In this document: positions 8,720-10,991 of the stretch, in pieces
How the letters are laid out: each line of letters starts with the position of its first letter
Numbering within the stretch: position 1 is the stretch's first letter
From: Tubulanus polymorphus
Taxonomy: Eukaryota; Animalia; Nemertea
Direction of reading: 5' to 3'
NCBI RefSeq assembly: GCF_964204645.1
Contig: NC_134035.1
Coordinates: 4,898,001 to 4,962,000 of the forward strand
Length of the DNA stretch: 64,000 bases
The notes under the pieces: model-generated
What the model was told of the DNA's origin: nothing
What the model saw: only the letters and a program-made list of their open reading frames with translations
Database searches by the model: none
Program-made: the position numbers and the translations under genes

Positions 8720-8847
8720 TACGGAAGCCCCTCTGTGACATACGAGATAATATTTTCACAATTTCGACTTATTATGTCGAAATTCGACATAATAATAAGT
8801 CGAACTTATGAAAACATTATCTCGTATGTCACAGAGGGGCTTCTGTA
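8720..8847. mobile_element. Foldback MITE between the convergent FDPS and neuropeptide 3' ends
   Basis: TACGGAAGCCCCTCTGTGACATACGAGATAAT ... ATTATCTCGTATGTCACAGAGGGGCTTCTGTA; almost fully self-complementary, with TA ends. Confidence 0.8.
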
Positions 8848-9340: not shown

Positions 9341-10991
9341 TCATCGTGTTTCACCGTAAGCGCCGCCCCAGGCGTTAGCGTTTTGCCGTTTCTCCGTATC
9401 GGAGCCGTACCCGCCGCCCCAACCGTTCGCGTTCAAACGCTTCTCGGCGTTTTCCCCGTACGCGCCACCCCAGGCGTTATGGTTTAGACTGCCTCGTTTG
9501 TCCGTCGATTCCTCCAGCCCGTAGCCACCTCCCCACGCGTTCTGGTTTTGCCGTTTTTCCGTGCCGTACGCGCCGCCCCACGCGTTCGCGTTCTGACGCT
9601 TCTCGGCGCCGTAACCGCCGCCCCAACCGTTTTCGTTCGGTTGCCGTTTAGAGCCGCCGGTCCTCTTAAACATTCGCTTATTGTTCAGACTACGCTTGCC
9701 CCAACCGAATTTGGATACTTGGTCGCTGTTTCGTTTCGTACCGTGTCGCAACAGTTCGGCTACTTGGTTTATATCGCTCAGTTGTGCCCAGGTATCTGTA
9801 TCGTGTGCGGCCGATCGTCTGTCGTTAGATTTCGGCTCGTCGTCTGCTGATGGGAACTGGCCCTCGCCGTATATCGCTAATGCATCTTTGTATGATTTAT
9901 CGACGTCCTTATTTTCTTCTGAATACGAGCCTGAAAATATAGAATAAATATTTGAGAAACATTTTGTGCGTTATTAATGAGTTTTGGAAGCACTCAAATG
10001 ACCCTCCCCCATGTTGCGACGGTTTCGTATTGGAATATGACGCAGTTTATATTCAGTATTCTCGGATGGTGAAAAAATATTTCTGTCCGCGGAAAAGCGA
10101 CGGATTCCAGTGGAGTTTTTATATACGATTCGACGCCGAATGAAGACAACAACTTTCATCCGCATCGATTGAAATTTGTGAAGTCCAATATTACGGGGGT
10201 CCGTACCCCAGCTTACTCATTGAGGTCGCCTTCGTTGGCAAGATAGATATCATCAAAATCTACCAATTCGTCCATCCACTCAAAAGATTAAGTGCACTCA
10301 CTAGGGATCGAACCCCGGGTCACAAACCGAGACTAACACGACTTGACCACTTTGCCAGTGGTTATCGGCGTAGTGTCGTATTTGCGCAACGCATCTTATC
10401 TGAACGAACTACCTATTGCGGGCCTCGTAGTTTGCAGTTTGCAGGCATTACTGGTCTTTGCTCGAGAAATGCCCGTTTATTTCTTTTAGACCCCATTCCC
10501 AGATCCCTCCCGGCAAAATATGGTTTTTCACAGATTTCAAGAACAGCGTCTCAGTTTCAGAACTGGCGCGAAATGTTTTTTTTTCGGAGCCATCATTAAA
10601 AATCTATGCGAACGGCAAACTCGTGGTCGCCTGGTTCACCGTCTAAGTGAAAATTAACTACGCCTAGTTAATAACACTTAACGTCAATTTCCCGCTGTTA
10701 AACGTTAGTTTTTAGGACGTTAAGCAAACGTTTCACGTAGTTAAAAACGCTTACGTCGCGTCGTTGATTGCTATCGATCATTGTCGACTCACGTTGGACG
10801 ACCATCGAACGAATTATCGTCAGCGCGCGTGCGCGCCGAGCCTTTTTAGCTTTTGAAAAGAAACTATGCCCGATCATTGATGGGATAGTCTCCTGATAGT
10901 TCCTCTTGTGAAACTTACCCGGGATATTCAGGATGAGTAATAGAGATACGATCGTGTAGCTGTGTTTTCTGAGATACTTCGTCCAGTCCAT
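9341..10991 (-). CDS. Neuropeptide precursor (220 aa): signal peptide, one FGW-amide and six NxN[AG]WGG[AG]YG peptides
   Basis: Exon 10919-10991 (MDWTKYLRKHSYTIVSLLLILNIP, phase-1 GTAAGT donor) joins exon 9341-9930 (GSYS-EENKDV...) in frame. The product has an acidic prosegment, repeated KR/RR sites, a GKR amidation site after FGW, and N-terminal Gln on four repeats. AATAAA (-) at ~8895-8900. Confidence 0.88.

Follow-up and report, generated by a model that had tools for sequence, protein, structure and literature searches.

Several described peptide families offer points of comparison for the gene reported here, including MIP/allatostatin B, RGWamide/APGWamide, spiralian GnRH/AKH-type peptides, kinins and cubozoan RYamides. 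MIP/allatostatin B is defined by the pattern W-x6-W-amide. In RGWamide/APGWamide precursors, the GW-amide is present in several copies and a pair of C-terminal Cys is spaced 20-30 residues apart, and MIP is grouped among the W-amides in the same survey (PMC8557429). Precursors of the spiralian GnRH-2-like/AKH type (e.g., QWSQSLGWGGAGAG-KR, PMC8557429 supplement 1) carry a single amidated copy right after the signal peptide, which is followed by a Cys-containing associated peptide. Kinins end in FxxWG-amide, and the leucokinin reported for Tubulanus polymorphus in 2021 is a normal FKPWGG-KR precursor with AFKPWGGKR/SFKPWGGKR units (PMC8557429). In cubozoan RYamides (W..GRY-amide, PMC6402141), Arg precedes the Tyr and a basic residue follows the Gly, which gives a Tyr-amide.

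For nemerteans, the main reference is Thiel et al. 2021 (PMC8557429), which covers 13 transcriptomes including that of T. polymorphus, lists ~1,300 precursors in 72 groups and names several lineage-specific ones. Its supplement 6 also reports a mass-spectrometry (MS) peptide from Lineus longissimus, DTNVDRNGWGGNY, which is C-terminally amidated (on Tyr) and assigned to transcript c35881_g1_i1|m.35853. That transcript (as c35881_g1_i1) is neither in the annotated pro-neuropeptide list files of the paper nor among its five new MS-derived precursors.

The gene that we compare with these systems is LOC141913127 of the palaeonemertean T. polymorphus, which RefSeq labels only "uncharacterized protein". 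It is a real, single-copy gene with two exons on the minus strand and, judging from its sequence, most likely encodes a secreted multi-copy pro-neuropeptide or prohormone-type pro-peptide. Positions given below are those of the window, i.e., the whole stretch of 64,000 nucleotides that was analysed (G000:C11:4898001-4962000), and the features are collected in Table 1.

Table 1. Features of LOC141913127 and its downstream flank, in window positions.
Feature	Position	Strand	Remarks
Coding exon 1	10919..10991	-	Met1 to first base of Gly25, MDWTKYLRKHSYTIVSLLLILNIP-G; putative signal peptide; matches N-terminus of P0001
Phase-1 intron, 988 bases	9931..10918	-	GTAAGT...TTTTCAG, canonical GT..AG; joined exons reproduce the RefSeq protein
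Coding exon 2	9341..9930	-	Residues 25-220 and TGA stop at 9341-9343; 196 codons
Acidic N-terminal propeptide, 36 residues (26-61), net charge -6	9821..9928	-	Followed by RR at 9815-9820
26-residue peptide SAAHDTDTWAQLSDINQVAELLRHGT between RR and KR	9737..9814	-	No amidation signal
NSDQVSKFGWG, KR on either side	9698..9730	-	Predicted product NSDQVSKFGW-amide
Dense cleavage linker KR-SLNN-KR-MF-KR-TGGS-KR	9644..9697	-	Splits to SLNN, MF, TGGS
Six KR-separated paracopies, core NxN[AG]WGG[AG]YG with variable acidic tails	9344..9643	-	
Repeat unit 1, QPNENGWGGGYGAE	9602-9643	-	14 residues
Repeat unit 2, QNANAWGGAYGTE	9557-9595	-	13 residues
Repeat unit 3, QNQNAWGGGYGLEESTD	9500-9550	-	17 residues
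Repeat unit 4, GSLNHNAWGGAYGENAE	9443-9493	-	17 residues
Repeat unit 5, LNANGWGGGYGSDTE	9392-9436	-	15 residues; contains LNANGWGGGYG
Repeat unit 6, QNANAWGGAYGETR	9344-9385	-	14 residues
Candidate polyadenylation signal ATTAAA	9201..9206	-	135 bases past stop; motif match alone
Canonical AATAAA	8894-8899	-	Motif match alone

The start codon lies at 10991 (context gagATGg). Joining 10991-10919 (73 bases, i.e., 24 codons plus one base, with the donor ...CCG G|GTAAGT at 10919) to 9930-9341 (590 bases) gives 663 bases, which translate locally to 220 amino acids. This product, leader included, equals XP_074660685.1/XP_074660686.1 over the full length (database record P0001), and RefSeq lists two transcript records for the locus. 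Base composition follows the second exon: in 200-base windows, GC is 0.50-0.61 inside exon 2 versus 0.30-0.49 in the flanking DNA. Database queries used either exon 2 as taken from the genome or P0001 itself, with the hand-joined exons serving for translation only. The preliminary description had proposed a signal-peptide exon spliced to a KR-punctuated exon; the agreement of the join with both RefSeq proteins bears out the splicing, and the first exon encodes a hydrophobic putative leader.

LOC141913127 has no paralogue in the 268-Mb genome. The degenerate DNA pattern WGG[AG]YG has ten matches there, six of which are in exon 2, and a reversed control pattern has four. The remaining four WGG[AG]YG matches are isolated singles, three of them G-runs, and no other gene in the genome carries the motif. 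FGWGKR likewise has no other coding occurrence; a second site at C11:6400200 was rejected as a chance match, the reading frame there being full of stops.

Two repeat-like stretches lie near or within the gene. About 500 bases downstream, an inverted-repeat element (8724-8843) reaches a word depth of 3215 in a DNA run, versus ~41 in its surroundings, and has sub-threshold Rfam matches to the MIR1120/MIR6274 hairpins of plants. Its appearance is that of a high-copy transposon of the MITE type, not that of a microRNA gene. The second stretch is intronic and similar to a tRNA-derived SINE, with a B-box motif like that of tRNA genes (GGTTCGATCCC, 10304-10314, minus strand). ARAGORN finds no tRNA in the intron, read depth over the B-box stretch is not raised, and Rfam has nothing within the gene.

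The N-terminus has the look of a secretory leader. Its most hydrophobic nine-residue window, TIVSLLLIL (residues 13-21), scores 2.99 on the KD scale versus a mean of -1.42 elsewhere in the protein, and the putative leader shows a basic n-region (K5, R8, K9) and small residues at PG|S. The rest of the protein is punctuated by eleven dibasic sites, ten KR and one RR, with KK and RK absent from the body. Ten KR in the 195-residue body compares with a mean of 1.09 and a maximum of 6 in 20,000 shuffles. Placement is equally regular: every KR sits between conserved units and none within, so that all six cores are bounded by KR.

A "core" in this context is the ten-residue NxN[AG]WGG[AG]YG stretch of each repeat unit, the first of which starts at residue 121. 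The amidation signal Gly-KR occurs once in the protein, as FGW-G-KR, and is absent after all six cores. The conserved core ends exactly at the Gly after Tyr, the usual place of an amidation signal, and the basic residue is absent there: the residues that follow YG in units 1-6 are A, T, L, E, S and E, with none basic in any copy. Net charge is negative or neutral in the predicted repeat peptides, and the whole protein contains 15% Gly, 5% Tyr and no Cys in 220 residues. The GGGY and GGAY variants alternate strictly along the array, and four of the six units begin with Gln, both as described earlier. The peptide list given in the preliminary description is also exact throughout, including NSDQVSKFGWG-KR, the 26-mer between RR and KR, and all six units.

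Divergence among the six ten-codon cores is mostly synonymous (pS 0.55, pN 0.11), with the 93 pairwise differences falling 8/26/59 on the first, second and third codon positions. The copies are therefore old, and purifying selection has maintained the peptide sequence. Two allelic differences in the coding sequence (9485 and 9704, from one DNA run) are both at third positions and synonymous.

Strict alternation of the variants had been taken to imply duplication of a two-peptide unit, and this part of the preliminary description does not survive. Such a duplication should leave units two apart as the most similar, which they are not. Mean DNA identity of the cores is 0.67 within variant classes versus 0.65 between them, and the closest pair, units 2 and 5 (0.82), belongs to opposite classes. 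Tandem Repeats Finder (TRF) gives a period of 45 bases, i.e., one unit, and the unit lengths (14, 13, 17, 17, 15 and 14 residues) have no two-unit rhythm. A strict 3+3 alternation would arise by chance with a probability of ~0.1. As the copies arose from one unit, a single ancestral loss of a basic site after the Gly would explain its absence from all six.

Relatives were sought at several levels of sensitivity. Pfam gave no match, and in two word searches against 5.8 billion clusters nothing but the protein itself (P0001) was retrieved, even at E<=10 with the repeat half as query. HMMER, run exhaustively against 1.84 billion representatives, gave eight non-self matches at E<=0.001, with E-values from 1e-6 to 5.5e-4. 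Of the seven that were inspected, five (P0002, P0003 and P0005-P0007; E 1e-6 to 7e-5, the best non-self matches) are precursors of 640-755 residues with many copies of KRQAFSAWAGKR...DDEKR, i.e., crustacean-type kinins. Another is an NPWGG repeat protein, and P0009 (E 5.5e-4) has ~22 copies of QPVWSGRYG-R. The alignments run in register with the same ~15-residue period, and the columns in common are EKR-Q, A/P-W and G, plus Y-G for P0009. These matches are weak and repeat-driven, and most of the columns in common are generic precursor features. Leaving aside the repeat protein, they are themselves multi-copy neuropeptide precursors, which speaks for a protein of that kind.

P0009 itself is an unannotated 624-residue protein (ENA ERZ25066855, contig ctg749_63x_l) with its copies in the form K-QP[VI]W[SN]GRYG-R-EADEVN, a layout that would yield many copies of pQPVWSGRY-amide, similar to the W..GRY-amides of cubozoans (PMC6402141).

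Neighbours found with a protein language model are nearly all multi-copy pro-neuropeptides, including allatostatin A, prothoracicostatic peptide, tachykinin, PBAN, FLP-1 and TRH, at a score of 0.86, which is under the level at which the tool is reliable. We treat them only as a lead, one that may point to the kind of protein and not to its family.

The absence of close relatives can be read against a control. The same word search with the T. polymorphus leucokinin gene returned 48 relatives (some in crabs, horseshoe crabs, ticks, insects and Urechis, others in Logan and ENA assemblies), so this type of search does find short-peptide precursors across phyla. Among the 18 of these 48 matches that were inspected, there was no heteronemertean-type GFRPWGGKR precursor, so nemerteans other than T. 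polymorphus seem to be poorly represented in the database. The missing relatives would accordingly argue for there being none outside Nemertea and say little about the phylum itself.

Published lists tell the same story. WGGGYG, WGGAYG, NAWG, AWGG and FGWGKR are absent from the nemertean, brachiopod and phoronid pro-neuropeptide lists of PMC8557429, as is the degenerate repeat motif put forward in the preliminary description. Pleurin, GxGH, GGRWamide and CP3-r have no entry in the supplement of that paper under the labels searched, and motif searches of its files were negative. Nemertean ND peptides can be set aside as unrelated, their motif being LWND/HGDD. In the searchable literature, the motif and its 5-mers lead to unrelated papers only. 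The orphan status first proposed for the gene is therefore upheld by the lack of a Pfam match, word searches that find only the protein itself, weak HMMER matches, and absence from the 2021 list and the searchable literature.

Kinins share with LOC141913127 a multi-copy organisation, a ~15-residue period, unit starts at KR-Gln, a W-G/A-G centre and acidic spacers ending in E/D-KR. However, the residue at W-3 in units 1-6 is E, A, Q, H, A and A, never Phe, and WGG runs into [AG]YG and an acidic tail. With no KR in that place, a WG-amide is impossible. T. polymorphus also has a separate canonical kinin gene on another chromosome (C6:6882456-6883361), with 11 FKPWGGK pattern matches in GFKPWGGKR units; unlike LOC141913127, it is a single coding exon with a contiguous leader and no intron after it. 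These defining residues and the separate gene are the grounds for rejecting kinin membership.

The remaining families are set apart in similar ways. One predicted product ends in x-Gly-Trp-amide (FGW-amide), as in RGWamide/APGWamide, but a single FGWG-KR copy and zero Cys in 220 residues are at odds with that family. For MIP/allatostatin B, the Trp expected seven residues upstream is missing from NSDQVSKFGW, and no repeat unit is amidated; MIP turns up only as a language-model neighbour (score 0.86). The earlier exclusion of kinin, MIP and APGW/RGWamide thus stands, the defining features of each being missing. GnRH-2-like/AKH-type peptides share the Gln start and W-G-G-A centre, but the six copies here are internal, from residue 121, and no Gly plus basic site follows them, which rules out the GnRH/AKH/corazonin type. 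Cubozoan RYamides and P0009 share a W-x-G-x-Y-Gly core, Gln/Pro starts, acidic spacers and a similar period. Those proteins, however, have Arg ahead of the Tyr and a basic residue behind the Gly, an arrangement that gives a Tyr-amide. LOC141913127 has neither, its Tyr being preceded by Gly or Ala and its YG followed by A, T, L, E, S or E, so the RYamide type was also rejected. Pedal peptide/orcokinin had been excluded as well, and this holds as far as the searches go (no such protein among the HMMER matches at E<=0.001, and no Pfam match).

If LOC141913127 does encode a pro-neuropeptide or prohormone-type pro-peptide, its processing would be as follows. Entry into the secretory pathway would depend on the exon-1 leader, cleavage at the one RR and ten KR on prohormone convertases, and removal of the basic residues on carboxypeptidase E. 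Peptidylglycine alpha-amidating monooxygenase (PAM) would convert ...FGW-Gly to NSDQVSKFGW-amide. Six non-amidated peptides of 13-17 residues, each with the core and a short acidic tail, would be freed, the N-terminal Gln of four of them could cyclise to pyroglutamate, and the released peptides would act on receptors. The data establish the gene structure, the excess of cleavage sites, purifying selection on the cores and the lack of detectable relatives; that the product is secreted, cut, made in neurons or used as a signal is putative. The architecture (leader, eleven dibasic sites, one Gly-KR and six paracopies under selection) favours the neuropeptide-precursor call of the preliminary description. 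Its further suggestion of an "undescribed signalling system" was overstated, given how often nemerteans have lineage-specific precursors and that the peptides have no known receptor or activity. Two features count against a precursor: the repeat peptides do not have the amidation that is typical of many neuropeptides, and a net negative charge is less common among them. A new, lineage-restricted pro-neuropeptide family is plausible.

Convertase-processed peptides need not be neuronal. Parallels are the Gly/Tyr/Trp-rich NLP/CNC peptides of the C. elegans epidermis and the multi-copy peptides of amphibian skin, and LOC141913127 could likewise encode a secreted precursor of gland, epidermal-mucus, proboscis or defence peptides. 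Nothing in the data places its expression in neurons, the WGG.YG core is reminiscent of the Gly/Tyr/Trp-rich nematode NLP peptides, and the mucus and proboscis secretions of nemerteans contain many peptides. We nevertheless consider a non-neuronal role unlikely: the net negative or neutral peptides are unlike most antimicrobial peptides, Gly makes up only 15% of the residues and Tyr 5%, the absence of Cys is unlike known nemertean peptide toxins, and no NLP-type or toxin protein is among the HMMER matches at E<=0.001.

It is also conceivable that the gene is a strongly derived offshoot of a W-containing amidated family (kinin or W..G.Y-amide), in which the basic site after the Gly was lost before the unit multiplied, fusing peptide and acidic spacer. 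The crustacean-type kinins, as best non-self matches, align EKRQ..AW.G in register with the same period, their KR falling onto the A/G-Y of the repeat, and P0009 aligns W.G.YG in register. Conservation that stops exactly at the Gly, the site of a would-be amidation signal, would fit such a loss, as would the reported Tyr-amidation of the Lineus peptide. The similarity, however, comes down to three or four core residues beyond what precursors generally share (KR, Gln start, acidic spacer). None of the six units has the kinin Phe at W-3, and the canonical kinin gene lies on a different chromosome and lacks an intron behind its leader; descent from either family is in our view quite improbable. 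An uncleaved secreted Asn/Gly-rich repeat protein, or a mis-annotated or non-functional open frame, would suit a locus annotated only as "uncharacterized" for which this analysis saw no transcript, peptide or orthologue, but is very improbable given the tenfold excess of KR placed exactly between conserved units, purifying selection on the cores, two SNPs that are both synonymous, and a 220-codon frame that is intact across a canonical intron and has two RefSeq transcript records.

The Lineus peptide deserves separate attention, as DTNVDRNGWGGNY-amide is the only pointer to a possible relative and, for now, a lead. It comes from the same phylum and has N-G-W-G-G-x-Y in common with unit 5. It differs in being reported as Tyr-amidated, whereas no amidation signal follows the cores here. 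The unused core Gly, the Lineus Tyr-amide and the in-register alignments with kinin and RYamide-type precursors feed both the putative derived-family origin above and a second putative reading, which we offer tentatively and think doubtful: LOC141913127 may be the first genomic member of an undescribed nemertean (possibly wider) W-G-G-x-Y family that has already been detected by MS in Lineus (NGWGGNY-amide), was never annotated, and in Tubulanus keeps the amidation Gly in its core without the basic site. If so, either an unconventional cut after the Gly produces Tyr-amides, or Gly-extended, acidic-tailed peptides are used, and in a bilaterian precursor processing of either sort would be unusual.

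Sequencing runs and transcript records bear on expression as follows. Three runs that contain the locus have reads over intron and exons alike and behave as DNA, and no contig on record has the exact spliced product. A search requiring near-identical 31-mers found none of the locus in a 2015 run (possible RNA). Given this requirement and the possible divergent lineage of that run, its silence is uninformative and does not show the gene to be silent. On the matter of lineage, the single genomic kinin locus (LOC141907067, also an "uncharacterized protein" in RefSeq) differs clearly from the 2021 transcriptome leucokinin in both units and leader, which suggests that cryptic species or divergent lineages underlie the T. 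polymorphus transcriptome and genome.

In an under-studied phylum where lineage-specific precursors are to be expected, LOC141913127 is an ordinary type of find, with one mildly unusual feature in its processing, and leaves the general picture unchanged. If the peptides of this probable pro-neuropeptide are made, the nemertean neuropeptidome gains a family missing from the survey of 13 transcriptomes published in 2021, and a RefSeq locus labelled "uncharacterized protein" gains a testable function. One amidated FGW peptide beside six non-amidated paracopies with an unused Gly would also make a small case for the gain and loss of processing sites, and the peptides would be candidate ligands for orphan spiralian GPCRs.
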